From assembly GCF_032444005.1 (NCBI RefSeq), contig NC_091284.1, positions 826,646,001 to 826,710,000 of the forward strand: 64,000 nt of DNA. Reading direction: 5' to 3'. Source of the stretch: Ranitomeya imitator. Taxonomy: Eukaryota. The notes below the pieces were generated by a model. That model did not search any database. It saw only the letters and a list, made by a program, of their open reading frames with translations, and was not told the origin of the DNA. Of the stretch, positions 3,455 to 64,000 are shown one piece after another. The position numbers were made by a program, and so were the translations under genes. Each line of letters opens with the position of its first letter. Positions within the stretch are counted from its first letter, which is position 1.

Positions 3455-3662
3455 TTTCTGACTGCCGACAGTAAAACTGCTTCACGGAGTCGTACATCCC
3501 GATGCGGATAGAGGCGAAGGTCATCTGCCGCTGCAGCCCGGCCACCAGCCCATTGTAGAGACTGGCCGGCCCCTCCATCTTCACCATGGTGGAGATCGTC
3601 CCCATCACCCCCTTGTACTGCACGACTCGGACGCTGGGCTGCGCCGGACCCTCCCCTTGGAT
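3455..3662 (-). CDS. UCP3: Uncoupling protein, second coding exon ([69 protein letters not shown])
   Basis: UCP-type [22 protein letters not shown]; acceptor cacctgcag|ATC, donor A|gtgagc; 208 nt, phase 0 to 1. Confidence 0.93.
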
Positions 3663-3735
3663 CTGCAGGTGGGACAGGGAGTGAAGACTTTTTCATATAT
3701 TTACACCCCTCCCCCCATCGGGTCACCTTATTTAC

Positions 3736-3861
3736 CTGCAGTCGGACTTTCGCCGTGTCTAAGGGGAATGTGAGCAAATCGGCAATACAGGCCGCCGTGC
3801 CAGCGCCCACAAACTTCACCATCAGCGTGGGGGGAACCTCGGAGGGCTTCAGTCCCACCAT
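3736..3861 (-). CDS. UCP3: Uncoupling protein, first coding exon ([42 protein letters not shown]); exon incl. 5'UTR spans 3736-3915
   Basis: Carrier motif PLDTAK; 126-nt coding part ending CAG|gtaaat; acceptor ttctatcttcacag| at 3916-3917; 73-nt intron to the next exon. Paralogue assigned from the MVGLKPS start plus same-strand adjacency to C2CD3. Confidence 0.9.
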
Positions 3862-4623
3862 CTTTACTTTTGTAGGTTTTGTAGTCGTCGACCAGTGATA
3901 CTCTTCACACGTTACCTGTGAAGATAGAATATTCTGACATTATCATCATGTAGTGGAGTACGTCTCCATACATTCCATTCATGTTCTTAAAGGGACAGTC
4001 CCTTTAAATAACGCTTAAAGGGCCTGGGGACAGACGTTTTTTTCTCCACTTATATACCTGTATTTCGGGCTAAAAATAAAGTATTTGCTATTGGGTTTCA
4101 TTACACATTTTGCACCGTTTGCCTTTTACAGGCTATCTTATGACCACAGATGACCCAAATACGTGGATATAAACACAAAAAAAGTTACTAAAACAATCCC
4201 TTTAATTACTCATTGTTTTCATGTGGTCTCCGGGACCAACAGAGGTGCTGGATTGTCAGATATTCTGGACTAGTGGGCTAAGATATGGTGCCGGACTATC
4301 AGAATTATTGGACTGTTGGATGCCAGATTAAAGGGATTCTGCATTGTGTGCAGAAGGGAAGCTGGAGCGTAACGGTGACTCCGATCATCGCTGATCTCAC
4401 ATTTCTTCACACGACTTCCCGTTTCGATCAGTTAATTTTCTGCTTGGTCATTAAATAAAACTCGGTGAAAGTTTTCGATATGTTCCTTAGTGACAAAGTC
4501 AGAAACCTCAAATTAAAGGACATCGTCCAATAAATGCTTCCATTTTCCTTACAAGACTTCTGCTTCCTGTCAGTGAATGAAAATCGGGACAGATCTAAGC
4601 ATACCCCCATCACCAAAAAATGG

Positions 4624-13600: not shown

Positions 13601-16600
13601 GAGCGGACCCTGCAGATAAATACAGACACCAGACCGGACCCCGCAGATAAATACAGACCCCGGACCGGACCCTGCAGATAAATACAGAACCCACACCGGA
13701 CCCTGCAGATAAATACAGACCCCAGACCGGACCCTGCAGATAAATACAGAACCCAGACCGGACCCTGCAGATAAATACAGACCCCAGACCGGACCCTGCA
13801 GATAAATACAGACCCCAGAGCGGACCCCGCAGATAAATAAAGACCCCAGACCGGACCCTGCAGATAAATACAGACCCAAGACCGGACCCTGCAGATAAAT
13901 ACAGACCCCAGACCGGACCCTGCAGATAAATACAGACCCCGGACCGGACCCCGCAGATAAATATAGACCCCGGACCGGACCCTACAGATAAATACAGACC
14001 CCAGACCGGACCCTGCAGATAAATACAGACCCCAGACCGGACCCTGCAGATAAATACAGACCCAAGACCGGACCCTGCAGATAAATACAGACCCCAGACC
14101 GGACCCTGCAGATAAATACAGACCCCGGACCGGACCCTGCAGATAAATACAGACACCAGACCGGACCCTGTAGATAAATACAGACCCGGACCGGACCCTG
14201 CAGATAAATACAGACCCCAGACCAGACCCTGCAGATAAATACAGACCCCAGACCGGATCCTGCAGATAAATACAGACCCCGGACCGGACCCTTTAGATAA
14301 ATACAGACCCCGGACCGGACCCTGCAGATAAATACAGACCCCGGACCGGACCCTGCAGAAAAATACAGACCCCGGACCGGACCCTGCAGATAAATACAGA
14401 CCCCGGACCGGACCCCACAGATAAATACAGACCCCGGACCCTGCAGATAAATACAAACCCCAGAGCGGACCCCGCATATAAATACAGACCCCAGACCGGA
14501 CCCTGCAGATAAATACAGACCCCAGACCGGACCCTGCAGATAAATACAGACCCCAGACCGGACCCTGCAGATAAATACAGACCCCGAACCCTGCAGATAA
14601 ATACAGACCTCAGACCGGACCCCGCAGATAAATACAGACCCCGGACCGGACCCTGCAGATAAATACAGACCCCAGACCGGACCCTGCAGATAAATACAGA
14701 ACCCAGACCGGACCCTGCAGATAAATACAGACCCCAGACCGGACCCTGCAGATAAATACAGACCCTGGACCGAACCCCGCAGATAAATACAGACCCCAGA
14801 CCGGACCCTGCAGATAAATACAGACCCCAGACCGGACCCTGCAGATAAATACAGAACCCAGACCGGACCCTGCAGATAAATACAGAACCCAGACCGGACC
14901 CTGCAGATAAATACAGACCCCGGACCCTGCAGATAAATACAGACCCCGGACCGGACCCTGCAGATAAATACAGACCCCAGACCGGACCCTGTAGATAAAT
15001 ACAGACCCCGGACCGGACCCCACAGATAAATACAGACCCCGGACCGGACCCTGCAGATAAATACAGACCCCAGAGCGGACCCCGCAGATAAATTCAGACC
15101 CCAGACCGGACCCTGCAGATAAATACAGACCCCAGACCAGAACCCTGCAGATAAATACAGACCCCAGACCAGACCCTGCAGATAAATAGAGACCCCAGAC
15201 CGGACCCTGCAGATAAATACAGACCCCGGACCGGACCCCGCAGATAAATACAGACCCCGGACCGGACCCTACAGATAAATACAGACCCCAGACCGGACCC
15301 CGCAGATAAATACAGACCCCGGACCGGACCCTGCAGATAAATACAGACCCCAGACCGGACCCCGCAGATAAATACAGACCCCGGACCGGACCCTGCAGAT
15401 AAATACAGACCCCAGACCGGACCCTGCAGATAAATACAGAACCCAGACCGGACCCTGCAGATAAATACAGACCCCAGACCGGACCCTGCAGATAAATACA
15501 GACCCCGGACCGAACCTCGCAGATAAATACAGACCCCAGACCGGACCCTGCAGATAAATACAGAACCCAGACCGGACCCTGCAGATAAATACAGACCCCG
15601 GACTGGACCCTGCAGATAAATACAGACCCCGGACCGGACCCTGCAGATAAATACAGACCCCAGAGCGGACCCTGCAGATAAATACAGACCCCAGACCGGA
15701 CCCTGCAGATAAATACAGAACCCAGACCAGACCCTGCAGATAAATACAGACCCCAGAGCGGACCCCGCAGATAAATACAGACCCCGGACCGGACCCTGCA
15801 GATAAATACAGAACCCAGACCGGACCCTGCAGATAAATACAGACCCGGACTGGACCCTGCAGATAGATACAGACCCCGGACCGGTCTCTGCAGATAAATA
15901 CAGACCCCGGACCGGACCCTGCAGATAAATACAGACCCGGACCGGACCCTGCAGATAAATACAGACCCCAGAGCGGACCCAGCAGATAAATACAGACCCC
16001 AGACTGGACCCTGCAGATAAATACAGAACCCAGACCGGACCCTGCAGATAAATACAGACCCCAGACCGGACCCTGCAGATAAATACAGAACCCAGACTGG
16101 ACCCCACAGATAAATACAGACCCCATACCGGACCCCACAGATAGATACAGACCCCAGACCGGACCCTGCAGATAAATACAGACCCCGGACCAGACCCCGC
16201 AGATAAATACAGACCCCAGACCGGACCCTGCAGATAAATACAGACCCCGGACCAGACCCCGCAGATAAATACAGACCCCAGACCGGACCCTGCAGATAAA
16301 TACAGAACCCAGACCGGACCCTGCAGATAGATACAGACCCCGGACCAGACCCCACAGATAAATACAGACCCCAGACCGGACCCTGCAGATAAATACAGAC
16401 ACCAGACCGGACCCTGCAGATAAATACAGACCCTGACCGGACCCTGCAGATAAATACAGACCCTGACCGGACCCTGCAGATAAATACAGACCCCAGACTG
16501 GACCCTGCAGATAAATACAGATCCCGGACCGCACCCTGCAGATAAATACAGACCCCAGACCGGACCCCGCAGATAAATACAGACCCCGGACCGGACCCTG

Positions 16601-17775
16601 CAGATAAATACAGACCCCAGACCGGACCCTGCAGATAAATACAGACACCAGACCGGACCCTGCAGATAAATACAGACCACAGACTGGACCCTGCAGATAA
16701 ATACAGACCCCAGACCGGAACCCGCAGATAAATACAGACCCCAGATCGGATCCGGCAGATAAATACAGAACCCAGACCGGACCCTGCAGATAAATACAGA
16801 CCCCGGACCGGACCCTGCAGATAAATACAGACACCAGACCGGACCCTGCAGATAAATACAGACCCCGGACCGGACCCTGCAGATAAATACAGACCCCGGA
16901 CCGGACCCTGCAGATAAATACAGACCCCAGACCGGACCCTGCAGATAAATACAGACCCTGACCGGACCCTGCAGATAAATACAGACCCCAGACTGGACCC
17001 TGCAGATAAATACAGACCCCGGACCGGACCCTGCAGATAAATACAGACACCAGACCGGACCCTGCAGATAAATACAGACCCCAGACCAGACCCTGCAGAT
17101 AAATACAGACCCCGGACTGGACCCCACAGATAAATACAGACCCCGGACCGGACCCTGCAGATAAATACAGACCCCAGACTGGACCCTGCAGATAAATACA
17201 GACCCCGGACCGGACCCTGCAGATAAATACAGACCCGGACCGGACCCTGCAGATAAATACAGACCCTGACCGGACCCTGCAGATAAATACAGACCCCAGA
17301 CCGGACCCTGCAGATAAATGCAGACCCCAGACCGGACCCTGCAGATTAATACAGACCCCAGACTGGAACCTGCAGATAAATACAGACCCCGGACCGCACC
17401 CTGCAGATAAATACAGACACCAGACCGGACCCTGCAGATAAATACAGACCCTGACCGGACCCTGCAGATAAATACAGACCCCAGACCGGACCCTGCAGAT
17501 AAATACAGACCCCAGACCGGACCCTGCAGATAAATACAGACCCCAGACTGGAACCTGCAGATAAATACAGACCCCGGACCGGACCCTGCAGATAAATACA
17601 GACCCCGGACCGGACCCTGCAGATAAATACAGACCCCGGACCGGACCCTGCAGATAAATACAGACCCCAGACCGGACCCCGCAGATAAATACAGACCCCA
17701 TACCGAACCCCGCAGATAAATAGAGACCCCGGACCGGACCCTACAGATAAATACAGACCCCAGACCAGATCCCTG
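4624..17775. repeat. Minisatellite, 31-bp unit (CAGATAAATACAGACCCCAGACCGGACCCTG), ~13.1 kb, ~420 copies, in putative UCP3 intron 1; degenerate tail to ~18120
   Basis: Periodicity read directly; source of the 200-1500 aa minus-strand ORFs. Confidence 0.97.
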
Positions 17776-18346
17776 AATATATACAACCCCCAGACCAGAC
17801 CCCTAAGTAAATATAGACCCCAAACCAGACCCCATAAACTAATGCAGACACCAGACCAGACCCCTGACTATATACAACCCCCAGAGTAGACCTCTAAATA
17901 AACACAGACCTCAGCCCAGACCCCTAAATATATACAGACCCTCAACCCAGACCCCTAAATATATACAGACCCTCAGCCCAGAGCCCCTAAACTAACACAA
18001 ATGCCAGAACCAAGACCAGACCTCTTACACCAATGCAGATCTGAGATCAGGTTTCTAGATTAATGAAAGTCCCCCAAAACTACAGACATCAGTCTCCATA
18101 ACACCAATCCAGACCCCTTTAATAAGTGCCACAGACCAGACTGCCCCCATTATATATATAACCAGTTTGCAGCAGGACATTTTGTGACATTTTGCAGAAA
18201 ACAGCTGAATGGAAGGGACTCACTGGGAAATGTAGTATTTTGGGGGTAATGTGCTAGTGCGGGGGCACCCGGCCTCTAGGAGATCTGTGGACGGAATCTG
18301 GGTGAAGGGTGAGACTTGTTGACACGTATATAATCACCGGGTGCCA

Positions 18347-20902: not shown

Positions 20903-21990
20903 GGCATCATACGGTGTGCAGGGACCATCATACTGTGTGCGGGGCATCATACTGTGTGTGGGGCTGTGGGGCATCATACTGTGTGTGGGGCTGTGGGGCA
21001 TCATACTGTGTGTGGGGGCTGTGGGGCATCATACTGTGTGTGGGGCTGTGGGGCATCATACTGTGTGTGGGGCTGTGGGGCATCATACTGTGTGTGGGGC
21101 TGTGGGGCATCATACTGTGTGTGGGGCTGTGGGGCATCATACTGTGTGTGGGGGCTGTGGGGCATCATACTGTGTGTGGGGCCTGTGGGGCATCATACTG
21201 TGTGTGGGGGCTGTGGGGCATCATACTGTGTGTGGGGGCTGTGGGGCATCATACTGTGTGTGGGGGCTGTGGGGCATCATACTGTGTGTGGGGGCTGTGG
21301 GGCATCATACTGTGTGTGGGGGCTGTGGGGCATCATACTGTGTGTGGGGCTGTGGGGCATCATACTGTGTGTGGGGCTGTGGGGCATCATACTGTGTGTG
21401 GGGCTGTGGGGCATCATACTGTGTGTGGGGCTGTGGGGCATCATACTGTGTGTGGGGGCTGTGGGGCATCATACTGTGTATGGGGCATCATACTGTGTGT
21501 GGGGGCATCATACTGTGTGTGTGGGGCATCATACTGTGTGTGGGGCTATGGGGCATCATACTGAGTGTGGGGGCTGTGGGGCATCATACTGTGTGTGGGG
21601 GCTGTGGGGCATCATACTGTGTGTGGGGGCTGTGGGGCATCATACTGTGTGTGGGGGCTGTGGGGCATCATACTGTGTGTGGGGGCTGTGGGGCATCATA
21701 CTGTGTGTGGGGGGCTGTGGGGCATCATACTGTGTGTGGGGGCTGTGGGGCATTATACTGTGTGTGGGGCATCATACTGTGTGTGTGGGGCTGTGGGGCA
21801 TCATACTGTGTGTGGGGCTGTGGGGCATCATACTGTGTATGGGGCATCATACTGTGTGTGGGGACTGTGGGGCATCATACTGTGTGTGGGCCATCATACT
21901 GTGTGTGGGGCTGTGGGGCATCATACTGTGTGTAGGGACTGCCTGTGGGGCATCATACTGTGTGTAGGGGCTGTGGGGCATCATACTGTG
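20903..21990. repeat. G-rich minisatellite, 27-28-bp unit (GGGCTGTGGGGCATCATACTGTGTGTG)
   Basis: Periodicity read directly. Confidence 0.95.
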
Positions 21991-22699: not shown

Positions 22700-23784
22700 C
22701 ATTATAGAGGTTGTCAGACAGATCTACTACAGGACAGAGCGGCCGCCATGTTTGTTGTCGTCCATCTTCCCCAGCTCTCCCCTCGCCTGCTGTGCCCTCA
22801 CCATCCCCTGCAGACTGTGAGCCCTCGCGGGCAGGGTCCTCTCTCCCCCTGCAGACTGTGAGCCCTCGCGGGCAGGGTCCTCTCTCCCCCTGCACACTGT
22901 GAGCCCTCGCGGGCAGGGTCCTCTCTCCCCCTGCAGACTGTGAGCCCTCGCGGGCAGGGTCCTCTCTCCCCCTGCACACTGTGAGCCATCGCGGGCAGGG
23001 TCCTCTCTCCCCCTGCAGACTGTGAGCCCTCGCGGGCAGGGTCCTCCCTCCTCCTGCAGACTGTGAGCCCTCGCGGGCAGGGTCCTCTCTCCCCCTGCAG
23101 ACTGTGAGCCCTCGCGGGCAGGGTCCTCTCTCCCCCTGCAGACTGTGAGCCCTCACGGGCAGGGTCCTCTCTCCTCCTGCAGACTGTGAGCCCTCGCGGG
23201 CAGGGTCCTCTCTCCTCCTGCAGACTGTGAGCCCTCGCAGGCAGGTTCCTCTCTCCTCCTGCAGACTGTGAGCCCTCGCAGGCAGGTTCCTCTCTCCTCC
23301 TGCAGACTGTGAGCCCTCGCGGGCAAGGTTCCTCTCTCCTCCTGCAGACTGTGAGCCCTCGCAGGCAGGTTCCTCTCTCCTCCTGCAGACTGTGAGCCCT
23401 CGCGGGCAAGGTTCTCTCTCCCCCTGCAGACTGTGAGCCCTCGCGGGCAGGTTCCTCTCTCCTCCTGCAGACTGTGAGCCCTCGCAGGCAGGTTCCTCTC
23501 TCCTCCTGCAGACTGTGAGCCCTCGCGGGCAGGTTCCTCTCTCCTCCTGCAGACTGTGAGCCCTCGCGGGCAAGGTTCTCTCTCCCCCTGCAGACTGTGA
23601 GCCCTCGCGGGCAAGTTCCTCTCTCCTCCTGCAGACTGTGAGCCCTCGCGGGCAGGTTCCTCTCTCCTTATGTACCCGTGTGCCTTCTTGTTTCACTCAT
23701 GTTTATTGTGCTTGTCTATCTCTGCCCCTTTCACATGTAAAGCGCCGTGGAATAAATGGCGCTATAAAATGTCTGATAATAATA
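22700..23784 (+). mobile_element. 5'-truncated L2-type LINE/SINE 3' end with an internal tandem expansion
   Basis: Ends TGTAAAGCGCCGTGGAATAAATGGCGCTATAAAA...TAATAATA, resembling the terminus of the L2 at 62321-62386; left edge uncertain. Confidence 0.7.
22808..23668. repeat. Minisatellite, 41-bp unit (CTGCAGACTGTGAGCCCTCGCGGGCAGGGTCCTCTCTCCCC), ~21 copies
   Basis: Period 41 checked at 22808/22849/22890. Confidence 0.95.
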
Positions 23785-24101
23785 GGAGGCCGGGGGCTGA
23801 TGTCCTGCTGCCGTGGTCACGGTGTTCCTGCTGACACCGGGTGGAAAGTGCCACATCTCCGCGCGTCACGGAAGATTATTCCTAGAAGTGACAGCGAACG
23901 TCTCATCCCGTCACCACACAGCCCCGTGATTGGCTGGAGGCGTGGAGCTCAGCCAATCAGCATCAGGGGCTGGTGGAGGGCCCGGTCCTGGTGACATCAC
24001 AAGGCGATATCCAGCACCTTGTTTACCGGAGACGGAGGAAACCCGACCCACGCAGTGCACCCGAGCTACTGTACCACAGCGCGCAGGCTGAGATACCACA
24101 C

Positions 24102-27100
24102 AGCAGCCAGTATCACACAGGACAGGATTAGATACACGGCTCAGCAGTCAGTATCACACAGGACAGGATTAGATACAGCGCAGCAGCCAGTATCACACAG
24201 GAGAGGATTAGATACACGGCTCAGCAGACAGTATCACACAGGACAGGATTAGATGCAGCGCATCAGACAGTATCACACAGGATAGGATTAGATACACGGC
24301 TCAGCAGACAGTATCACACAGGACAGGATTAGATACAGCGCAGCAGTCAGTATCACACATGATAGGATTAGATACACGGCTCAGCAGACAGTATTACACA
24401 GGAGAGGATTAGATACATGGCTCAGCAGACAGTATCACACAAGATAGGATTAGATACATGGCTCAGCAGACAGTATCACACAGGACAGGATTAGATACAG
24501 CTCAGCAGACAGTATCACACAGGACAGGATTAGATGCAGCGCATCAGACAGTATCACACAGGAGAGGATTAGATACAAGGCTCAGCAGACAGTATCACAC
24601 AGGATACGATTAGATACACGGCTCAGCAGACAGTATCACACAGGACAGGATTAGATACACGGCTCAGCAGACAGTATCACACAGGAGTGGATTAGATACA
24701 CGGCTCAGCAGACAGTATCACACAGGATAGGATCAGATACAGCGCAGCAGTCAGTATCACACATGATAGGATTAGATACAGCTCAGCAGACAGCATCACA
24801 CAGGATAGGATTAGATACATGGCTCAGCAGACAGTATCACACAAGATAGGATTAGATACACGGCTCAGCAGACAGTATCACACAGGACAGGATTAGATAC
24901 AGCTCAGCAGACAGTATCACACAGGACAGGATTAGATGCAGCGCATCAGACAGTATCACACAGGAGAGGATTAGATACAAGGCTCAGCAGACAGTATCAC
25001 ACAGGATACGATTAGATACACGGCTCAGCAGACAGTATCACACAGGACAGGATTAGATACACGGCTCAGCAGACAGTATCACACAGGAGTGGATTAGATA
25101 CACGGCTCAGCAGACAGTATCACACAGGATAGGATCAGATACACAGCTCAGCAGACAGTATCACACAGGAGAGGATTAGATACACAGCTCAGCAGACAGT
25201 ATCACACAGGAGGGGATTAGATACACGGCTCAGCAGACAGTATCACACAGGAGAGGATTAGATACACAGCTCAGCAGACAGTATCACAGGAGGGAATTAG
25301 ATACACGGCTCTGCAGACAGTATTACACAGGATAGGATTAGATACAGCTCATCAGACAGTATCACACAGGAGAGGATTAGATACACAGCTCAGCAGACAG
25401 TATCACACAGGAGGGGATTAGATACACGGCTCAGCAGACAGTATCACACAGGAGAGGATTAAATACACAGCTCAGCAGACAGTATCACACAGGAGGGGAT
25501 TAGATACACGGCTCAGCAGACAGTATCACACAGGAGAGGATTAGATACACAGCTCAGCAGACAGTATCACAGGAGGGAATTAGATACACGGCTCTGCAGA
25601 CAGTATTACACAGGAGAGGATTAGATACAGCTCATCAGACAGTATCACACAGGAGAGGATTAGATACACGGCTCAGCAGACAGTATCACACAGGATAGGA
25701 TTAGATACACGGCTCAGCAGACAGTATCACACAGGACAGGATTAGATACAGCGCAGCAGTCAGTATCACACATGATAGGATTAGATACACGGCTCAGCAG
25801 ACAGTATTACACAGGATAGGATTAGATACAGCTCAGCAGACAGCATCACACAGGATAGGATTAGATGCAGCGCATCAGACAGTATCACACAGGAGAGGAT
25901 TAGATACACGGCTCAACAGACAGTATCACACAAGACAGGATTAGATACACGGCTCAGAAGACAGTATCACACAGGACAGGATTAGATACAGCGCAGCAGT
26001 CAGCATCACACATGATAGGATTAGATACACGGCTCAGCAGACAGTATCACACAGGATAGGATTAGATGCAGCGCATCAGACAGTATCACACAGGAGAGGA
26101 TTAGATACACGGCTCAGCAGCCAGTATCACACAGGACAGGATTAGATACAGCTCAGCAGACAGTATCACACAGGACAGGATTAGATACAGCTCAGCAGAC
26201 AGTAACACACAGGACAGGATTAGATACAGCTCAGCAGACAGTATCACACAGGACAGGATTAGATACAGCTCAGCAGACAGTATCACACAGGACATGATTA
26301 GATACACAGCTCAGCAGTCAGTATCACACAGGATAGGATTAGATACACAACTGAGCAGACAGTATCACACAGGATAGGATTAGATACAGCTCAGCAGACA
26401 GTATCACACAGGACAGGAATAGATAAACGGCTCAGCAGCCAGTATCACACAGGACAGGATTAGATACAGCTCAGCAGACAGTATCACACAGGACAGGATT
26501 AGATACAGCTCAGCAGACAGTATCACACAGGAGAGGATTAGATACAGCTCAGCAGACAGTATTACACAGGATAGGATTAGATACAGCTCAGCAGACAGCA
26601 TCACACAGGATAGGATTAGATACATGGCTCAGCAGACAGTATCACACAAGATAGGATTAGATACACGGCTCAGCAGACAGTATCACACAGGACAGGATTA
26701 GATACAGCTCAGCAGACAGTATCACACAGGAGAGGATTAGATACAAGGCTCAGCAGACAGTATCACACAGGATACGATTAGATACACGGCTCAGCAGACA
26801 GTATCACACAGGACAGGATTAGATACACGGCTCAGCAGACAGTATCACACAGGATAGGATCAGATACACAGCTCAGCAGACAGTATCACACAGGAGAGGA
26901 TTAGATACACGACTCAGCAGACAGTATCACACAGGATAGGATCAGATACACAGCTCAGCAGACAGTATCACACAGGAGGGGATTAGATACACGGCTCAGC
27001 AGACAGTATCACACAGGAGAGGATTAGATACACAGCTCAGCAGACAGTATCACAGGAGGGAATTAGATACACGGCTCTGCAGACAGTATTACACAGGATA

Positions 27101-29893
27101 GGATTAGATACAGCTCATCAGACAGTATCACACAGGAGAGGATTAGATACACGGCTCAGCAGACAGTATCACACAGGATAGGATTAGATACACGGCTCTG
27201 CAGACAGTATTACACAGGATAGGATTAGATACAGCTCATCAGACAGTATCACACAGGAGAGGATTAGATACACGGCTCAGCAGACAGTATCACACAGGAC
27301 AGGATTAGATACAGCGCAGCAGTCAGTATCACACATGATAGGATTAGATACACGGCTCAGCAGACAGTATTACACAGGATAGGATTAGATACAGCTCAGC
27401 AGACAGCATCACACAGGATAGGATTAGATGCAGCGCATCAGACAGTATCACACAGGAGAGGATTAGATACACGGCTCAGCAGACAGTATCACACAAGACA
27501 GGATTAGATACACGGCTCAGCAGACAGTATCACACAGGACAGGATTAGATACAGCGCAGCAGTCAGCATCACACATGATAGGATTAGATACACGGCTCAG
27601 CAGACAGTATCACACAGGATAGGATTAGATGCAGCGCATCAGACAGTATCACACAGGAGAGGATTAGATACACGGCTCAGCAGCCAGTATCACACAGGAC
27701 AGGATTAGATACAGCTCAGCAGACAGTATCACACAGGACAGGATTAGATACAGCTCAGCAGACAGTAACACACAGGACAGGATTAGATACAGCTCAGCAG
27801 ACAGTATCACACAGGACAGGATTAGATACAGCTCAGCAGACAGTATCACACAGGACATGATTAGATACACAGCTCAGCAGTCAGTATCACACAGGATAGG
27901 ATTAGATACACAACTGAGCAGACAGTATCACACAGGATAGGATTAGATACAGCTCAGCAGACAGTATCACACAGGACAGGATTAGATACAGCTCAGCAGA
28001 CAGTATCACACAGGACAGGATTAGATACAGCTCAGCAGACAGTATCACACAGGACAGGATTAGATACAGCTCAGCAGACAGTATCACACAGGACAGGATT
28101 AGATACAGCTCAGCAGACAGTATCACACAGGACAGGATTAGATACACGGCTCAGCAACCATTATCACACAGGACAGGATTAGATACAGCTCAGCAGCCAG
28201 TATCACACAGGACAGGATTAGATACAGCGCAGCAGCCAGTATCACACAGGACAGGATTAGATACACAACTCAGCAGACAGTATCACACAGGACAGGATTA
28301 GATACAGCTCAGCAGACAGTATCACACAGGACAGGATTAGATACAGCTCAGCAGACAGTATCACACAGGACAGGATTAGATACAGCGCAGCAGCCAGTAT
28401 CACACAGGACAGGATTAGATACCGCACAGCAGCCAGTATCACACAGGAGAGGATTAGATACAGCGCAGCAGCCAGTATCACACAGGAGAGGATTAGATAC
28501 AGCGCAGCAGACAGTATCACACAGGAGAGGATTAGATACACAACTCAGCAGACAGTATCACACAGGAGAGGATTAGATACACAACTCAGCAGACAGTATC
28601 ACACAGGATAGGATTAGATATATGGCTCAGCAGTCAGTATCACACAGGAGAGGATTAGATACACAACTCAGCAGACAGTATCACACAGGACAGGATTAGA
28701 TACACAACTCAGCAGACAGTATCACACAGGATAGAATTAGATACAGTGCAGCAGTCAGTATCACACAGGATAGGATTAGATACAGTGCAGCAGTCAGTAT
28801 CACACAGGATAGGATTAGATACAGCGCAACAGCCAGTATCACACAGGATAGGATTAGATACACAGCTCAGCAGCCAGTAACACATAGGATAGGATTAGAT
28901 ACACAGCTCAGCAGACAGTATCAAACAGGATAGAATTAGATACAGCGCAGCAGCCAGTAACACACAGGATAGGATTAGATACAGCGCATCAGACAGTATC
29001 ACACAGGATAGGATTAGATACAGCGCATCAGACAGTATCACACAGGATAGGATTAGATACAGCACAGCAGTCAGTATCGCACAGGATAGGATTAGATACA
29101 CAGCTCAGCAGGCAGTATCACAGAGGATAGGATTAGATACATCATTACGGTAGACAGTATCACACAGGAGAGGATTAGATACACGGCTCAGCAGACAATA
29201 TCACACAGGATAGGATTGGATACACGGCTCAGCAGACAGTATCACACAGGAGAGGATTAGATACACGGCTCAGCAGACAGTATCACACAGGACAGGATTA
29301 GATACACGGCTCAGCAGTCAGTATCACACAGGAGAGGATTAGATACACGGCTCAGCAGACAGTATGACACAGGATGGGATTAGATACACAGCTCAGCAGA
29401 CAGTATCACACAGGATAGGATTAGATACTTGGCCCAGCAGACAGTATCACACAGGATAGGATTAGATACACAGCTCAGCAGACAGTATCACACAGGATAG
29501 GATTAGATACACGGCTCAGCAGACAGTATCACACAGGATAGGATTAGATACACGGCTCAGCAGACAGTATCACACAGGAGAGGATTAGATACACAGCTCA
29601 GCAGTCAGTATCACACAGGAGAGGATTAGGTACACGGCTCAGCAGACAGTATCACACAGGATAGGATTAGATACACAGCTCAGCAGTCAGTATCACACAG
29701 GAGAGGATTAGATACACGGCTCAGCAGACAGTATCACACAGGATAGGATTAGATACACGGCTCAGCAGACAGTATCACACAGGATGGGATTAGATACACG
29801 GCTCAGCAGACGGTATCACACAGGATGGGATTAGATACACGGCTCAGCAGTCAGTATCACACAGGAGAGGATTAGATACACGGCTCAGCAGAT
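24102..29893. repeat. Minisatellite, 39/41-bp unit (CTCAGCAGACAGTATCACACAGGACAGGATTAGATACACGG), ~5.8 kb, intergenic
   Basis: Periodicity read directly. Confidence 0.96.
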
Positions 29894-31449: not shown

Positions 31450-33293
31450 TCTACTGTATAATCGCCTAATTCTGTCTGTTTGTAACGGAAATCCCGCGTC
31501 GCTGATTGGTCGCATCAGCCGCCCATGACCAATCAGCGATATTGGCGTGGAATTTAACCCCACACTCACAGTGCCACGTAGTTCAGTCACGTTTACTGAA
31601 CAAGTTCTGTCAGTCACAGTGCCACGTAGTTCAGTCACGTTTACTGAACAAGTTCTGTCAGTCACAGTGCCACGTAGTTCAGTCACGTTTACTGAACAAG
31701 TTCTGTCAGTCACAGTGCAACGTAGTTCAGTCCCGTTTACTGAACAAGTTCTGTCAGTCACAGTGCCACGTAGTTCAGTCACGTTTACTGAACAAGTTCT
31801 GTCAGTCACAGTGCCATGTAGTTCAGTCCCGTTTACTGAACAAGTTCTGTCAGTCACAGTGTGACATAGTTCACTCACGTTTACTGAACAAGTTCTGTCA
31901 GTCACAGTGTGACATAGTTCACTCACGTTTACTGAACAAGTTCTGTCAGTCACAATGTGACATAGTTCACTCACGTTTACTGAACAAGTTCTGTCAGTCA
32001 CAGTGTGACATAGTTCACTCACGTTTACTGAACAAGTTCTGTCAGTCACAGTGCCACGTAGTTCAGTCCCGTTTACTGAACAAGTTCTGTCAGTCACAGT
32101 GTGACATAGTTCACTCACGTTTACTGAACAAGTTCTGTCACAGTGCCACGTAGTTCAGTCACGCTTACTGATTAAGTTCTGTCAGTCACAGTGTCACATA
32201 GTTCACACACGTTTACTGAACAAGTTCTGTCAGTCACAGTGCCACGTAGGTCAGTCACGCTTACTGATTAAGTTCTGTCAGTCACAGTGTCACATAGTTC
32301 ACACACGTTTACTGAACAAGTTCTGTCAGTCACAGTGCCACGTAGTTCACTCACGTTTACTGAATAAGTTCTGTCAGTCACAGTGCCACGTAGGTCATTA
32401 AAGTTTTCTGAACAAGTTCTGTCGGTCACAGTGCCACGTAGTTTAGTCACGTTTACTGAATAAGTTCTGCCAGTCACAGTGCCACATAATCCACGCACGT
32501 TTACTGAACAAGTTCTGTCAGTCACAGTGCCACATAGTTCACTCACGTTTACTGATTAAGTTCTGTCAGTCACAGTGCCATGTAGTTCAGTCACGTTTAC
32601 TGAGCAAGTTCTGTCAGTCACAGTGCCACGTAGTTCAGTCAAGTTTACTGAACAAGTTCTGTCAGTCACAGCGCCATGTAGTTCAGTCCCGTTTACTGAA
32701 CAAGTTCTGTCAGTCACAGTGCCACATAGTTCACTCACGTTTACTGAACACGTTCTGTCAGTCACAGTGCCACATAGTTCAGTCAAATTTACTGAACAAG
32801 TTCTGTCAGTCACAGTGCCATGTAGTTCAGTCACGTTTACTGAACAAGTTCTGTCAGTCACAGTGCCACGTAGTTCAGTCACATTTACTGAACAAGTTCT
32901 GTCAGTCACAGTGCCACATAGTTCACTCACGTTTACTGAACACGTTCTGTGAGTCACAGTGCCACATAGTTCACGCACGTTTACTGAACAAGTTCTGTCA
33001 GTCACGGTGCCATGTAGTTCAGTCACGTTTACTGAACAAGTTCTGTCAGTCACAGTGCCACATAGTTCACGCATGTTTACTGAACAAGTTCTGTCAGTCA
33101 CAGTGCCACGTAGTTCAGTCATGTTTACTGAACAATTTCTGTCAGTCACAGTGCCACATAGTTCACTCACGTTTACTGAACAAGTTCTGTCAGTCACAGT
33201 GCAATATAGTTCACTCACGTTTACTTTGTAAGTAAACTACATACAGTACATCTTCTAGAATATCCGATGCGTTAGAATCGGGTCACCATCTAG
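31450..33293 (+). mobile_element. Non-autonomous Helitron, copy 1
   Basis: A|TC 5' end, CTAG|T 3' end, hairpin CCGAT...ATCGG (33264-33281) 8 nt before CTAG, no TSD; both ends shared with copy 2 at 57885-60718. Confidence 0.8.
31564..33225. repeat. Minisatellite, 48-bp unit (CAGTCACAGTGCCACGTAGTTCAGTCACGTTTACTGAACAAGTTCTGT) inside Helitron copy 1
   Basis: Periodicity read directly. Confidence 0.95.
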
Positions 33294-38159: not shown

Positions 38160-38306
38160 TCATTTCTTATCAGGAAACTGTGCTGCAAAAATCCTGGCGA
38201 TGCGATTCACCTCGGCCTCCGGGAGTTCGGCCCTTGTCATCCTGGGGACTGGGCGATGGCGACGTCGGAAGGGGATTCCTCTAGGGGCCTCAGTGATATC
38301 CTCATC
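38160..38306 (-). CDS. C2CD3: C2CD3 terminal coding exon (DEDITEAPRG...LPEAEVNRIARIFAAQFPDKK*)
   Basis: ctttccctttacag| acceptor, phase 0; resembles the human C-terminus LPEEETLRIARIFSSQ as recalled. Confidence 0.9.
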   Translation of the reverse strand, partial: DEDITEAPRGIPFRRRHRPVPRMTRAELPEAEVNRIARIFAAQFPDKK

Positions 38307-40710: not shown

Positions 40711-43238
40711 CCAATGGCTGCCCCCCGCATCACCCCGTGTACCAATGGCTTCCCCCCCGCATCACCCCGTGTACCAATGGCCGCCCCCCACATCACCCCG
40801 TGTACCAATGGCTGCCCCCCGCATCACCCCGTGTACCAATGGCCGCCCCCCGCATCACCCCGTGTACCAATGGCTGCCCCCCGCATCACCCCGTGTACCA
40901 ATGGCTGCCCCCCGCATCACCCCGTGTACCAATGGCCGCCCCCCGCATCACCCCGTGTACCAATGGCTGCCCCCCGCATCACCCCGTGTACCAATGGCTG
41001 CCCCCCGCATCACCCCGTGTACCAATGGCCGCCCCCCGCATCACCCCGTGTACCAATGGCCGCCCCCCGCATCACCCCGTGTACCAATGGCTGCCCCCCG
41101 CATCACCCCGTGTACCAATGGCTGCCCCCCGCATCACCCGTGTACCAATGGCTGCCCCCCGCATCACCCGTGTACCAATGGCTGCCCCCCGCATCACCCG
41201 TGTACCAATGGCTGCCCCCCGCATCACCCCGTGTACCAATGGCCGCCCCCCGCATCACCCGTGTACCAATGGCCGCCCCCCGCATCACCCCGTGTACCAA
41301 TGGCCGCCCCCCGCATCACCCCGTGTACCAATGGCCGCCCCCCGCATCACCCCGTGTACCAATGGCCGCCCCCCGCATCACCCCGTGTACCAATGGCTGC
41401 CCCCCGCATCACCCCGTGTACCAATGGCTGCCCCCCGCATCACCCGTGTACCAATGGCTGCCCCCCGCATCACCCCGTGTACCAATGGCTGCCCCCCGCA
41501 TCACCCCGTGTACCAATGGCTGCCCCCCGCATCACCCCGTGTACCAATGGCTGCCCCCCGCATCACCCGTGTACCAATGGCTGCCCCCCGCATCACCCCG
41601 TGTACCAATGGCTGCCCCCCGCATCACCCCGTGTACCAATGGCTGCCCCCCGCATCACCCGTGTACCAATGGCTGCCCCCCGCATCACCCCGTGTACCAA
41701 TGGCCGCCCCCCGCGTACCAATGGCCGCCCCCCGCATCACCCGTGTACCAATGGCCGCCCCCCGCATCACCCCGTGTACCAATGGCTGCCCCCCGCATCA
41801 CCCCGTGTACCAATGGCTGCCCCCCGCATCACCCCGTGTACCAATGGCTGCCCCCCGCATCACCCCGTGTACCAATGGCTGCCCCCCGCATCACCCGTGT
41901 ACCAATGGCTGCCCCCCGCATCACCCCGTGTACCAATGGCTGCCCCCCCCGCATCACCCCGTGTACCAATGGCTGCCCCCCCCGCATCACCCCGTGTACC
42001 AATGGCTGCCCCCCGCATCACCCCGTGTACCAATGGCTGCCCCCCGCATCACCCGTGTACCAATGGCTGCCCCCCGCATCACCCTTGTACCAATGGCTGC
42101 CCCCCGCATCACCCTTGTACCAATGGCTGCCCCCCGCATCACCCCGTGTACCAATGGCTGCCCCCCGCATCACCCCGTGTACCAATGGCTGCCCCCCGCA
42201 TCACCCCGTGTACCAATGGCTGCCCCCCGCATCACCCCGTGTACCAATGGCTGCCCCCCGCATCACCCCGTGTACCAATGGCTGCCCCCCGCATCACCCC
42301 GTGTACCAATGGCTGCCCCCCGCATCACCCGTGTACCAATGGCTGCCCCCCGCATCACCCCGTGTACCAATGGCTGCCCCCCGCATCACCCGTGTACCAA
42401 TGGCTGCCCCCCGCATCACCCGTGTACCAATGGCTGCCCCCCGCATCACCCCGTGTACCAATGGCTGCCCCCCGCATCACCCCGTGTACCAATGGCTGCC
42501 CCCCGCATCACCCCGTGTACCAATGGCTGCCCCCCGCATCACCCCGTGTACCAATGGCTGCCCCCCGCATCACCCGTGTACCAATGGCTGCCCCCCGCAT
42601 CACCCGTGTACCAATGGCTGCCCCCCCGCATCACCCCGTGTACCAATGGCTGCCCCCCGCATCACCCCGTGTACCAATGGCTGCCCCCCGCATCACCCCG
42701 TGTACCAATGGCTGCCCCCCCCGCATCACCCCGTGTACCAATGGCTGCCCCCCCCGCATCACCCCGTGTACCAATGGCTGCCCCCCGCATCACCCGTGTA
42801 CCAATGGCTGCCCCCCGCATCACCCCGTGTACCAATGGCTGCCCCCCCCGCATCACCCCGTGTACCAATGGCTGCCCCCCGCATCACCCGTGTACCAATG
42901 GCTGCCCCCCGCATCACCCCGTGTACCAATGGCTGCCCCCCGCATCACCCCGTGTACCAATGGCTGACCCCCCCCGCATCACCCCGTGTACCAATGGCTG
43001 CCCCCCGCATCACCCGTGTACCAATGGCCGCCCCCCGCATCACCCCGTGTACCAATGGCCGCCCCCCGCATCACCCCGTGTACCAATGGCTGCCCCCCGC
43101 ATCACCCGTGTACCAATGGCTGCCCCCCGCATCACCCCGTGTACCAATGGCCGCCCCCCGCATCACCCCGTGTACCAATGGCCGCCCCCCGCATCACCCC
43201 GTGTACCAATGGCTGCCCCCCGCATCACCTGTGTACCA
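40711..43238. repeat. C-rich minisatellite, 30-31-bp unit (CCAATGGCTGCCCCCCGCATCACCCCGTGTA), last C2CD3 intron
   Basis: Periodicity read directly. Confidence 0.96.
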
Positions 43239-44287: not shown

Positions 44288-44393
44288 CTTGGGATCCGAC
44301 GAGGGGATCGCGGGAGAAAGGCTCAGGAATCTCATCGACGCCTCCAAGTGCTCAGGAGGAAGGAAGAAGTTTGGGAGAAGGAGCGGATCCGAG
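44288..44393 (-). CDS. C2CD3: C2CD3 penultimate exon (SDPLLLPNFFLPPEHLEASMRFLSLSPAIPSSDPK)
   Basis: PNFFLPP..LEAS.R.LSLS motif; ccag|C acceptor (phase 2), AAG|gtgcgt donor; 106 nt. Confidence 0.92.
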
Positions 44394-44519
44394 CTGGACG
44401 TGAGAGAGTTAAGGAGGAGATAGAAAACAGCGACAAAACCACAGGGGGACGAGACGGAGATGACGAGGGCTGAGCCAGCTGCAAGTCAAGGGGACGACTG
44501 AGTAAAGTAAAAGGTCAAG

Positions 44520-44645
44520 AAGTGTTACAAAATATATAAGAAAAAAAATATATATAAAAATTAAAACAAAAAAATAAAATAAAAAAACCACACGTTTGGT
44601 ATCGCCACATTCAGAATCGCTCGATCAAGAAAAAAAATAATTATA

Positions 44646-44694
<49 letters not shown>

Positions 44695-45248
44695 TATATT
44701 CATCCGATCAGTTACGGCGTAACAAGAAAAAAATCAAAAAATCACAGAATTACTTTTGTCGCTGCAACATTGAAATAAAATACGAGGAGATCAAAAAAAT
44801 CATATCTACCCCAAAATGGTATCAATAAAAACGTCAGCAAAATAAGCCATCGCCCCAGAGCCTGGAAATGGAGACGCTACGGGGCTCGTAAAATAACGAC
44901 AAAACACAAAAACTTTTTTTTCATTCAAATTTTGGAATTTTTTTTTCACCACTTAAAAAAAAAAAAAGAAGCCAGACATGTTTGTTATGTGCGAACTCGC
45001 ACTGACCGGGAGAATCACAATCGCAGGTCCGTTTTAGCAGTGAGTAAATAAAAGTCCGTAAAACAATTGTGAAACTTCAGCGCACTTGGAATTTTTCCCC
45101 GTTTGCTATGTGGTTAAATCAATGGCGTCAATCAAAAGTACAACTCGTCCCCCATCAAGCGATGGGGACGGACAAATAAAAAAGTTATGGCCCCGAGACA
45201 AAGGGGAGCAAATAACGGAAACAAAAGATCGTCTGTGGGTGAAGGGGT
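44520..45248 (-). mobile_element. TTAA piggyBac-like non-autonomous element (reverse orientation)
   Basis: Minus strand begins TTAA|CCCCTTCA and is similar to the element starting at 57105; inner edge approximate. Confidence 0.65.
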
Positions 45249-45250
45249 TA

Positions 45251-46130
45251 ACCCTTTCCCGATCGGGCGACTTTTCCATCCACATATGAGATTTTGCTTT
45301 TTGCGGCACAAGTTGTACTTTTGAAGGACACAATTCATTTATCATGTGATACACCGGAAAGCGAAATAAAAGCTCAATTCCGCAAGTGTTTTGGGTTTTT
45401 CTTCCTTGTTTATTATACGGTAAAACTGACCTTCCAATATGATTCCCCAGCTCAGTGCGAGTCCACAGATACCAAACGGGTCTAGTTTTGTTTTTTTTTC
45501 TTCTTAAGTGGCACAAACATTTTTTCCCCAAAAAATTTGTAAAAAAAAATTCTGCTTATGTCGCCATTTTTCAAGCCCCGTATTGTTTTCAATTTTTGGT
45601 GGATGGGGCTGTGCGAGGGAATATTTTTTTTGACATCCTGACATTTTTATCGATACCATTTTGGGGTCGATATGATATTTTGATCACTTCTTACTGCATT
45701 TTTTGTTGCTTTGTTGCGGTTGCTGAAAAACCATAAATCTCGAGGTCAGAATATTTGTTTTTTTCTGATTACGGCATTTACTGATCGGGTTACTTAATTT
45801 AATATTTTTATAGATTGGACTTTTACAGACACAGCGATAACAAGTATGTGGATTTTTATTATTTTTTTTCTTTATTTTTAATGCAGGAAAAGGGGGATGC
45901 TTTCAGCTTTTTTTTTCATGTAGTTCTTAAAACTTTTTTTTTTTTTTTTACTGTATTTAATAGTCCCCTTAGGGGACTTGAAGCTGCGATCATCTGATTG
46001 CTCGTGCTGTATCAGCCCTGCTATGTGTTGTGATGACCACGGTCTCCTATGAACGCCGGCTACAGGATGGTAATCACAGGAGGATCGCCATGACAGGCAC
46101 GGGGGTCTTCAGCAGACTGTACATCAGAAG
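45251..46130 (+). mobile_element. Related TTAA piggyBac-like element, head-to-head with the previous one
   Basis: TTAA|CCCTTTCCCG start; shared blocks such as AGTTGTACTTTTGA and GCGATA(A/C)CAA; right edge approximate. Confidence 0.6.
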
Positions 46131-46284
46131 GGGCTGGTGAATGCAGAACACGCAGTGGTCTTACACACTGGCTTCTAGGGAATTTCTGCTTTCCCACCTT
46201 ATATAAAACATGGCGGTTGTTTGGCAGTAAGTCCCCGGCGGCTGCATCTCGCCGCTCCCTGCACCAGATCAGAGTAAAGGATAC

Positions 46285-47074
46285 AGTACGTGCCCGCTCC
46301 GCCTGCCTGGTGGCTCGGTGGGCTCCTCCTCTGACGGGCCGGTGTCCGGGTGGATAGGGTCTCCTTGCGATCTCCTCTCCTCCTGGTCATCCGCGGTATC
46401 AGATTCCTCCCCATGTACGTCATTAGTCTCCAGGTCAGCTGAGGTTTTATCGGCCTCCCCCGTGGTCTCGTCAGAGCCTCCGTCCTCACAAAGGTCGGGG
46501 GTTGGGATTGTGTGTAAATCTCGCTCTTCGATCTTAGCACAGCCCATGATTCGGGGGTCCTCATCTGAGCTTTGCAGTTCACTAGATCCATCAGAGCTGA
46601 GGGTATTGGTCCGATCGACCTCATATTCAGCGCCCTCGGTGTGACCTACGGCTGGCGGGCTGTCTGCTAGGTCCGGTTCCATGAAATCGGGCTCAGTGTC
46701 GGTCACCATACTGGACCAGGGGCTGGTCCTGTCCGTCATGGTGGTGATCTCATTAAGAGTCCGGGGTTCGATGACATTTTCCTCGTACTCCTCGTCGCTG
46801 CTGTTGTGGAGATCCAGGAAAAAGCGGCCTTCTCTCACCGCAGGGTCGGACAGGTCGTCCATGTTGTCCTCTCCATTATTAGAGAAGGGTGGAGTGTCTT
46901 CTCTGGGGTGATCACTCTCATCATCCACCTCCACCGTGTGACCTATGACCTCCGTACTCTCGGGTAGCCGGGCAGGAGATGGCGCCTGAGCTCCTGCCTC
47001 TGTGTGCTGGACCTGACATGCTGCATCGATCCCGCTGTTGGTCGATCCTCGAAAGAGACCATTTCCCTGAAGAC
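46285..47074 (-). CDS. C2CD3: C2CD3 large acidic exon (GLQGNGLF...SDEEYEENVIEPRTLNEITTMTDRTSPWSS...RSGHVL)
   Basis: EPRTLNEITT.TD.TSPWSS motif; ttgctccag| acceptor, phase 1; 790 nt = 2+262x3+2. Confidence 0.92.
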
Positions 47075-47245: not shown

Positions 47246-48572
47246 CAATGATCTGAGGGGACGATGGTGCATGTATAGGGGGCTGCACGGCTAGTAATCT
47301 AAGGGGGTGATGGTTCACGTATAGGGGCTGCACGGCCGGTGATCTGAGGGGCTGATGGTGCATGTATAGGGGGCTGCACGGCCGGTGATCTGAGGGGGTG
47401 ATGGTGCATGAATAGGGGGCTGCAGGGTCGCTGATCTGAGGGGGTGATGGTGCACGTATAAGGGGCTGCACGGCATGTGATCTGAGGGGGTGATGGTGCA
47501 CGTATAGGGGGCTGCACGGCCGGTGATCTGAGGGGGTGATGGTGCACGTATAGGGGGCTGCACGGCCGGTGATCTGAAGGGGTGATGGTGCATGAATAGG
47601 GGGCTGCACGGCCGGTGATCTGAGGGGGTGATAGTGCACGTATAGGGGGCTGCATGGCCGGTGATCTGAGGGGGTGATGGAGCACGTAAAGGGGGCTGCA
47701 CGGCCGGTGATCTAAGGGGGTGATGGTGCACGTATAGGGGCTGCAGGGTCGCCGATCTGAGGTGGTGATGGTGCACGTATAGGGGGCTGCACGGTCGGTG
47801 ATCTGAGGGGGTGATGGGGCATGTATAGGGGGCTGCACGGCTGGTGAGCTGAGGGGGTGATGGTGCACGTATAGGGGGCTGCAGGGTCGCTGATCTGAGG
47901 TGGTGATGGTGCACGTATAGGGAGCTGCATAGCTGGTAATCTGAAGGGGTGATGGTGCATGAATAGGGGGCTGCACGGCCGGTGATCTGAGGTGGTGATG
48001 GTGCACGTATAGGGAGCTGCATAGCTGGTAATCTGAAGGGGTGATGGTGCACATATAGGGGCTGCACGGCCGGTGATCTGAGGTGGTGATGGTGCACGTA
48101 TAGGTGGCTGCATGGCCGGTGATCTGAGGGGGTGATAGTGCACGTATAGGGGGCTGCATGGCCGGTGATCTGAGGGGGTGATGGAGCACGTATAGGGGGC
48201 TGCATGGCCGGTGATCTGAGGGGGTGATGGAGCACGTATAGGGGGCTGCACGGCCGGTGATCTGAGGTGGTGATGGTGCACGTATAGGGGCTGCAGGGTC
48301 GCTGATCTGAGGTGGTGATGGTGCACGTATAGGGGGCTGCACGGCCGGTGAGCTGAGGGGGTGATGGTGCACGTATAGGGAGCTGCATGGCTGGTAATCT
48401 GAAGGGGTGATGGTGCACATATAGGGGGCTGCACGGCCTGTGATCTGAGGAGGTGATGGGGCATGACTAAGGGGCTGAACAGCGAGTAATCTGAGGGGGT
48501 GATGGTGCACGAACAGGGGGCTGCATGGCTCGTAATCTGAGGGGGTGGTGGTGCATTTATAGGGGGCTGCAC
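47246..48572. repeat. Minisatellite, 45-46-bp unit (GATCTGAGGGGGTGATGGTGCACGTATAGGGGGCTGCACGGCCGGT)
   Basis: Periodicity read directly. Confidence 0.95.
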
Positions 48573-48576
48573 GTAC

Positions 48577-56635: not shown

Positions 56636-57884
56636 CTGCAAGAAAAAAAAAACGTTCATTAATATCTTCATGTGCAAAATCCTCCGGGCAACATGTATAA
56701 CTGGAGCTTCTATCAGAGAGCGCAGCTGCAGTGCAAAGTATGGGAAGGGGTATGTGCCTTTAATAACGGCAACGACCGATCACTGCTGTTAACCCTTTAC
56801 AGTCTGAGAGGCCAGGAAAACTCGCAGCAGAACGTCCGCGTCTGCCTCTAGCTCGCTCCATCCTCCTCCATAGACCTTAAAGAACAGCGAGGTGACAGTC
56901 TGGATTCGCTGACGGAGCATTTTAGACTGCGATTTTAGTAGCTAGATACTGATCAAACGATCGCAGGGTCAATTCCCCCACAGGAACGTAAAAAAATAAA
57001 AGATATATATATAAAAAAAAAAAAATTCCTGTGTCACGCCAAAGACGCGCCCGGAAACATTAAATATATTTGTTAAATCGATGAATCCGTAAAAGTCCGG
57101 TCATTTAACCCCTTCATGACCCGGGGTATTTTCGTTTTAGTTTTTCGCTCCCCTTCTTCCCAGATCCATAACTTTTTTATTTTTCCGTCACTATGGCCGT
57201 GTGAGGGCTTGTTTTTTCGCGTGACGAGTTGCACTTTTGAACGACACCATTGGTTTTAACATATCTTTTACTGGAAAACAGGAAAAAAAATCCAAGTGCG
57301 GTGAAATTGTAAAAAAGTGCAGTCCCACACATGATTTTTGTTTGGCTTTTTTGCTAGGTTCACTAAATGCTAACACTGACCTGCCATTATGATTCTCCAG
57401 GTCATTACGAGTTCATAGACACCAAACATGTCTACGTTATTTTTTATCTAAGTGGTGAAAAAAAATTCCAAACTTTGCTAAAAAAAAAATAAAAATAAAA
57501 AATTTCGCCATTTTCCGATACCCATAGCGTCTCCATTTTTCGTGATCTCAGGTCGGGTGAGGGCTTATTTTTTGCGCCAAGCTGAAGTTTTTAATTATAC
57601 CATTTTGGTGCAGATACGTTCTTTTGATCACCCGTTATTGCATTTTAATGCAATGTCACGGCGACCAAACAAAAGTAATTCTGGTGTTTTGAATTTTTTT
57701 CTCGCTTTGCCGTTTAGTAATCAGGTTAATCCTTTTTTTCGGGTGATTCTGAACGCAGCGATACCAAATATGTGTATGTTTGATTTTTTTTTTAATTGTT
57801 TTATTTTGAATGAGGCAAAAGGGGGGTGATTTCATCTTTTAGATTTTTTTTTTATATTTTTATAAACATTTTTTTTTTCTGCCA

Positions 57885-62320: not shown

Positions 62321-64000
62321 TAATAATAATAATAATAATAATTTTATTTATATAGCGCCAACATATTCCGCAACGCTTTACAAATTATAGAGGGGACTTG
62401 TACAGACAATAGACATTACAGCATAACAGAAATCACAGTTCAAAACAGATACCAGGAGGAGTGAGGGCCCTGCTCGCAAGCTTACAAACTATGGGGAAAA
62501 GGGGAGACACGAGAGGTGGATGGTAACAATTGCTTTAGTTATTCGGACCAGCTATAGTGTAAGGCTCAGGTGTTCATGTAAAGCTGCATGAACCAGTTAC
62601 CTGCCTAAGTATGTAGCAGTACAGACACAGAGGGCTAATACTGCATAAAGTGTATGAGAACATGATGCGAGGAACCTTTTTTTTTATTTTTTTTTTTATT
62701 ATAAATAGGCCACACAGGGATCGTTAGGTTAATGCATTGAGGCGGTAGGCCAGTCTGAACAAATGAGTTTTTAGGGCACGCTTAAAACTGTGGGGATTGG
62801 GGATTAATCGTATTAACCTAGGTAGTGCATTCCAAAGAATCGGCGCAGCACGTGTAAAGTCTTGGAGACGGGAGTGGGAGGTTCTGATTATTGAGGATGC
62901 TAACCTGAGGTCATTAGCGGAGCGGAGGGCACGGGTAGGGTGGTAGACTGATACCAGGGAGGAGATGTAGGGTGGTGCTGAGCCATGGAGTGCTTTGTGG
63001 ATGAGGGTAGTAGTTTTGTACTGGATTCTGGAGTGGATGGGTAGCCAGTGTAATGACTGGCACAGGGTAGAGGCATCGGTGTAACGGTTGGTGAGGAATA
63101 TGATCCTGGCAGCAGCATTCAGGACAGATTGGAGCGGGGAGAGTTTTGCAAGAGGGAGACCGATTAGTAGAGAGTTACAATAGTCCAGACGAGAATGAAT
63201 AAGTGAAACAGTCAGAGTTTTTGCAGAGTCGAAATTAAGAAAAGGGCGAATTCTAGAAATGTTTTTGAGATGCAGGTAAGAAGAGCGAGCCAGTGATCGG
63301 ATGTAGGGGGTGAATGAAAGGTCAGAATCAAGGATGACCCCAAGGCAGCGGGCATGTTGCTTTGGAGTAATGGTGGAACCGCACACGGAGATGGCAATGT
63401 CAGGCAAAGGTAGGTTAGTAGAGGGAGAGAACACGAGGAGTTCAGTTTTTGACAGGTTTAGTTTCAGATAGAGGGAGGACATGATGTTAGAGACAGCGGT
63501 AAGACAATCACTGGTGTTTTCTAAAAAGGTCGGTGTGATATCGGGAGCAGAAGTGTATAATTGGGTGTCGTCAGCATAGAGATGGTACTGGAAACCAAAT
63601 CTACTGATTGTTTGTCCAATAGGGGCAGTATACAACGAGAAGAGTAGGGGGCCTAGGACTGATCCTTGAGGAACCCCAACAGTAAGGGGAAGGTGAGAGG
63701 AGGAGGAACCAGCAAAACATACAGTGAAGGATCGGTCAGAGAGATAGGAGGAGAACCAGGAGAGAACGGTGTCCTTGAGGCCGATGGAGCGGAGCATAGT
63801 GAGGAGGAGCTGATGATCCACAGTGTCAAATGCTGCAGAGAGATCCAAGAGAATTAGCATGGAGTAGTGACCATTAGATTTAGCTGTTAGTAGGTCATTA
63901 GAGACTTTAATGAGGGCAGTTTCAGTAGAGTGTAAAGAGCGGAAGCCAGATTGAAGAGGGTCGAGAAGAGAGTTATCTGAGAGATAGCGGGTAAGACGGG
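62321..64000 (-). mobile_element. L2-clade LINE, 3' part, in a C2CD3 intron; runs off the right edge
   Basis: RT ORF, ~380-nt 3'UTR, terminal ...GCGTTGCGGAATATGTTGGCGCTATATAAATAAAA and (ATT)n tail at 62321-62341. Confidence 0.93.
62724..63998 (-). CDS. LINE ORF2 reverse transcriptase, C-terminal 424 aa, no stops to the window edge
   Basis: [56 protein letters not shown]; frame checked by hand upstream of the ATG at 63860. Confidence 0.93.

Follow-up and report, generated by a model that had tools for sequence, protein, structure and literature searches.

A probable U12-type intron preceding the conserved C-terminal exons of the C2CD3 gene in the frog Ranitomeya imitator

The locus and its repeats

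The window analysed here is a 64-kb stretch (64,000 nucleotides) of the Ranitomeya imitator genome (NC_091284.1), whose minus strand carries a gene that we identify from its sequence as C2CD3. Pfam was silent on the C2CD3 exons (seven exon translations searched, 0 domains for those of C2CD3), and the name was therefore taken from a word search with the exon 56408-55743. This exon matched the Thamnophis sirtalis 'C2 domain-containing protein 3-like' protein (E 1.3e-51), bearing out the assignment to this centriole and cilium protein made in an earlier sequence-only reading, and was 98% identical to an unnamed-product Ranitomeya imitator protein in the same search. The C-terminal blocks TDRTSPW and PNFFLPP follow one another in the same order in homologues, and those matches bear no gene name; for P0003-P0005, listing their cluster members brought up no informative name either. 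A second gene lies on this strand beyond the 3' end of C2CD3:

3381-3939, minus strand: two mitochondrial-carrier exons, UCP-like (Mito_carr, E 2e-10 and 8e-07)

Human C2CD3 presumably adjoins UCP3/UCP2, and the downstream carrier exons at 3381-3939 would fit such a neighbourhood.

At least about a third of the window is minisatellite DNA. In the introns on both sides of the region described below, large GC-rich minisatellites show a strong skew between strands and give rise to long spurious ORFs: one in the last intron (40711-43238; 31-bp unit, 82 copies) and one in the intron that precedes the large exon (47249-48573; 46-bp unit in 29 copies, higher-order period of 275 bp). A 13-kb array sits in the interval separating C2CD3 from the carrier gene (4624-17832; 31-bp unit, about 429 copies, 91% matches), and further arrays are found at 20941-21990, 22807-23668, 24101-29892 (41/80 bp, 144 copies) and 31566-33225. 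At the opposite edge of the window, an open reverse-transcriptase frame (RVT_1) of 424 aa (62727-63998, minus strand; E 7e-29) continues beyond the last position and belongs to a LINE-type insertion in one of the upstream introns of C2CD3.

Another Ranitomeya imitator contig (CAUEEQ010059493.1, 10001-15746) is about 93% identical to the window at the nucleotide level, and its public annotation breaks C2CD3 into separate models (272 and 331 aa), each entered as 'unnamed protein product'. The alignment covers only window positions ~62490-49644 and not the U12 intron; no U12 donor-like motif was found in the stretch compared, which does not align to the intron.

Splice signals, reading frame and content of the intron

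The features at the 3' end of the gene are as follows, with exon borders marked by a slash in the motifs.

46285..47066, minus strand: large C2CD3 exon, fast-evolving and acidic (acceptor tcttcag/GGA at 47067/47066, read from the sequence; homologues P0001-P0007)
46274..46284, minus strand: U12-type 5' splice site GTATCCTTTAC (direct reading; the sole GTATCCTTT in the window)
46269..46271, minus strand: in-frame TGA met on retention of the intron (translation reading)
44394..46284, minus strand: intron of 1,891 nt, GT-AG, phase 2 (sequence reading, phase and homology)
44408..44415, minus strand: U12 branch-point box TCCTTAAC (sole copy in the window)
44394..44395, minus strand: 3' splice site AG (first AG past the branch box)
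44288..44393, minus strand: PNFFLPP exon, 106 nt (67-70% identity with P0004 and P0005, the alignments beginning exactly at the SDP or EP junction)
38160..38306, minus strand: last coding exon (acceptor tttacag/GAT, phase 0; encodes DEDITEAPRGIPFRRRHRPVPRMTRAELPEAEVNRIARIFAAQFPDKK and then a stop)

The large exon contains the conserved block EPRTLNEITTMTDRTSPWSS and ends in ...CAC GTA CT at 46285, in phase 2 (...GHV + CT). Together with the C at 44393 this CT forms a Leu codon, and the frame continues as SDPLLLPNFFLPPEHLEASMRFLSLSPAIPSSDPK. The PNFFLPP exon in turn ends in AAG/GTGCGT at 44288/44287, a good U2-type donor in phase 0. A 6-kb last intron separates it from the final exon (38306-38160, RIARIF and stop), to which it would join straight, as the phases (K/D, 0-0) suggest.

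Both ends of the 1,891-nt intron carry signals of the minor class. The donor motif /RTATCCTT stands right at the exon end, in the form GTATCCTTTAC. Near the other end, cTCCTTAAC at 44416-44408 matches the branch consensus TTCCTTRAY with a C in place of T directly before TCCTTAAC. The branch point is likely the A at 44409, at a distance of 15 nt from the final intron base (44394), and no other AG occurs between this A and the AG at 44395-44394. U12 introns have about 10-20 nt between branch point and 3' splice site and use the first AG; the 15 nt found here fall within that range. A branch box some 15 nt before the AG had been noticed in the sequence-only reading, and the positions of TCCTTAAC (44415-44408) and of the AG agree with it. 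Over both strands of the 64-kb window, GTATCCTTT and TCCTTAAC occur once each, where chance would give 0.39 and 1.41 copies, and the donor and branch box coincide exactly with exon borders that homology sets independently.

The join through CT had also been described as the only phase-correct one. It does reach the PNFFLPP exon in phase, and its uniqueness is to be qualified: enumeration of GT/AT and AG sites yielded one further phase-compatible donor, CCC/GTCAGA at 46335, a U2 donor of poor quality and without conservation. Retention of the intron would carry translation through L-Y-P-L-L to a stop at the TGA 46271-46269, as had been predicted. The exon is contained in 19 listed sequencing runs, whose RNA nature is only a guess.

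The interior of the intron was searched for repeats by local BLAST, with 44944-44983 masked. This detected two copies of a roughly 0.7-kb dispersed repeat, and a third copy elsewhere in the gene (no strand assigned):

44558..45226: repeat copy A, inverted relative to copy B (three pieces, 64-78% identity to 57807-57130)
45390..45944: repeat copy B, in the same orientation as 57341-57878 (66% identity over 572 nt, E 1e-29)
57130..57878: third copy, in an upstream C2CD3 intron (local BLAST)

The two inverted, diverged copies make up about 1.2 of the 1.9 kb of the intron (~65%), with 64-78% identity to 57130-57878; a (TA)n run at 44642-44699 brings the share, together with both copies, to about two thirds. 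The earlier description of an intron mostly filled by transposons is borne out only in part, by the old dispersed-repeat copies (~1.2 of 1.9 kb) and the (TA)n run. Over the full 64 kb, Rfam returned no family at gathering level; at E<=1, the intron parts and the third repeat copy gave no meaningful match. A reading of these repeats as Penelope-like elements or retrozymes found no support, as no hammerhead was detected with Rfam.

The junction in other species

A word search with the large exon alone as query returned seven proteins (P0001-P0007). Five of the seven are read-through ORFs of genomic contigs that end in ...L-Y-P, ...S-Y-P-L or ...P-Y-P, endings that result from GTATCC being translated in this phase. 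The contig DNA gave the following donors:

L001: ACT/GTATCCTTTC
L003: TTC/GTATCCTTTAC (Logan SRR27275996)
L005: CCT/GTATCCTTTT (Podarcis lilfordi)
L006: ACC/GTATCCTTC
L007: CCT/GTATCCTTA
L008: CTT/GTATCCTTA

The motif /GTATCCTT is therefore present at the same codon phase in six other loci, from at least five other species. When the seven donors (window, L001, L003 and L005-L008) are aligned, the eight bases of GTATCCTT are the sole invariant columns, and the exon and intron flanks have diverged. On the L003 contig of 9.8 kb, three more RTATCCTT matches (797, 3448 and 6180, gene strand), a number above the chance expectation, are not in any obvious exon context and were put down to coincidence.

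The acceptor could be compared in the window and in L003 and L005, the only two other loci that reach it:

L003: gTTCCTTAACagttctgctcag/ACCTGATCCTGTTGTTGTTCCCAACTTCTTC (intron of about 640 nt)
L005, Podarcis: cTTCCTTAACgctgccttgcag/ATCTGACCCCGTGGTCGTCCCCAACTTCTTC (intron of about 3 kb)

TCCTTAAC is invariant in all three acceptors, and in these two amniote loci 13 nt separate TTCCTTAAC from the AG that precedes the PNFF exon. With GTATCCTT common to seven loci and TCCTTAAC to three while the flanks diverge, the pattern argues for selection on the U12 signals themselves.

Podarcis lilfordi (GCA_947686815.1) also provides an annotated protein across the junction. The NCBI protein P0004 (CAI7935431.1) is spliced VVL/SDPVVVPNFF and reads ...EPSVVL/SDPVVVPNFFLPPQDLEASMRLLS, and the PNFF exon of the window aligns to it from residue 332, the S of SDP, exactly at the junction (67% identity). 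P0005 shows the same continuity. The alignment start and this continuity indicate that the join proposed here is the conserved, annotated one. The sequence-only reading had expected ab initio annotation to mis-splice this junction, which does not hold in general, as the Podarcis model has it right. The introns of Podarcis and L003 have the donor CT or TC/GTATCCTTT and, like the frog intron, lead to the PNFFLPP exon, and the annotated Podarcis protein uses the same junction as the frog model; they differ in length (~3.0 kb and ~0.64 kb, respectively) and in having 13 rather than 15 nt between branch point and AG.

Whether the orthologous intron was already catalogued had been left as a question, to which the answer is yes for human and mouse. 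The minor-intron database MIDB lists one C2CD3 minor intron in each species: chr11:74028399-74033350 in human (ENST00000334126, 4,952 nt) and chr7:100455492-100459776 in mouse (4,285 nt) (Olthof et al., 2019; PMC6717393). The published strings are, for human, the 5' splice site GCTGTATCCTTT (score 98.7) and the branch site TGTCCCTTAACT (87.9), and, for mouse, TCTGTATCCTTT (99.5) and TATTCCTTAACT (96.5) (PMC6717393). The donor 12-mers of all compared contigs differ from the published human string, and no contig was regarded as human. The window 12-mers ACTGTATCCTTT and TCCTCCTTAACT recur verbatim in introns of other genes in Table S2 of the same study, where they score 100 and 91.6. C2CD3 is listed with the human genes that contain minor introns and are linked to Joubert and Jeune syndromes (PMC7507305), and DDX59 knockout in human cells led to retention of its U12 intron, leaving U2 introns unaffected (PMC12095793).

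The human and mouse introns resemble that of the frog in lying in the same gene, in the CT at the exon end (GCT or TCT, followed by /GTATCCTTT), in an identical donor GTATCCTTT, in the branch core CCTTAACT and in their kilobase size (4.9 and 4.3 kb versus 1.9 kb). They differ in the third-last exon base, which is A in the frog and G or T in the mammals, and the frog intron is shorter and filled with frog-specific repeats. The human intron presumably sits near the 3' end of the gene, going by the gene's coordinates. Orthology is suggested by the exon-end CT, the near-identical motifs and the listing of a single intron; a codon-level correspondence is presumed from the strings and the listing. 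The minor introns of other cilium genes, among them TCTN1, TCTN3, TMEM107, ARMC9 and IFT80, belong to the same class, likewise lie in ciliopathy genes and are retained on impaired minor splicing, but these are other genes and positions, and the likeness to the frog C2CD3 intron is one of kind only.

Interpretation of the intron

The frog intron is, very probably, orthologous to the one minor-spliceosome intron (U12-type, GT-AG subtype) that C2CD3 has. It is a real and canonical U12-type intron, of a kind already known, and holds nothing surprising for a specialist. That a minor-spliceosome intron lies beside the conserved C2CD3 C-terminus was the central proposal of the sequence-only reading, and the signals, the phase, the conserved donor and branch box, the Podarcis junction and the human and mouse catalogue all support it. 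From these, we infer that the junction is used in the frog and depends on the minor spliceosome.

Several other readings of the same evidence were weighed. The junction might be correct and the intron nevertheless be excised by the major (U2-type) spliceosome, its U12-like motifs being relics, and the GT-AG termini and pyrimidine-rich 3' end are compatible with this. The donor itself, however, is poor by the U2 consensus (CT/GTATCC against MAG/GTRAGT), neither its eight U12 bases nor the branch box vary between distant species whose flanks have diverged, and the human orthologue acts as a U12 intron (PMC12095793), all of which makes excision by the major spliceosome very improbable. Much the same low probability attaches to a different splice pattern, with the donor at 46335 or with an extra exon, located either within the 1.9 kb of the U12 intron or in the stretch from the PNFF to the RIARIF exon. 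CCC/GTCAGA at 46335 is indeed compatible in phase, but this poor donor is not conserved, the lizard proteins P0004 and P0005 pass from the acidic exon into (S)DP- or EP-xVVPNFF without insertion, and the intron interior is old repeat DNA.

A chance coincidence of motifs, in a region that is no functional intron border, is the least probable reading and can be given almost no weight. A single GTATCCTTT does arise when the window is shuffled, in 32 of 100 cases; against this, the donor and branch box lie at homology-defined exon ends, in the right order, on one strand and in phase, and six other loci show the motifs again at the orthologous position. As far as sequence comparison can tell, these data effectively refute it.

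For a U12-type intron, the steps of removal can be drawn from established knowledge of this type of splicing. U11 snRNA would pair with GTATCCTTT at 46284, and U12 snRNA with UCCUUAAC at the branch box TCCTTAAC (44415-44408), leaving the A at 44409 bulged; the first AG, 15 nt past this branch A, would serve as the 3' splice site. The ...GHVL end of the large exon would thereby be joined to SDPLLLPNFFLPP..., and the mRNA would gain the conserved C-terminal tail, encoded by the PNFF exon and then the RIARIF exon. Were the intron not removed, the frame would stop five codons in.

The main value of the intron is for annotation. C2CD3 models are fragmentary in the repeat-rich giant genomes of frogs, as the split Ranitomeya imitator products exemplify, and attaching the conserved C-terminal exons of C2CD3 needs a splice model that is aware of U12 introns. 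The exact position and signals of the single C2CD3 minor intron are kept from amphibians to mammals, a further example in line with the deep conservation already known for minor introns of cilium genes; no new question arises from it.

The inverted repeat copies allow a more speculative scenario, to which we give very little credence. An old repeat would have invaded the intron in the frog lineage as inverted copies, and their pairing in the pre-mRNA might loop out the interior, tuning slow minor splicing or favouring retention, with a regulated C2CD3 isoform cut before the PNFF/RIARIF tail as the outcome. The best inverted match between copies A and B extends over 65 nt at 83% identity (44773-44837 versus 45638-45701), with the two segments lying about 800 nt apart.
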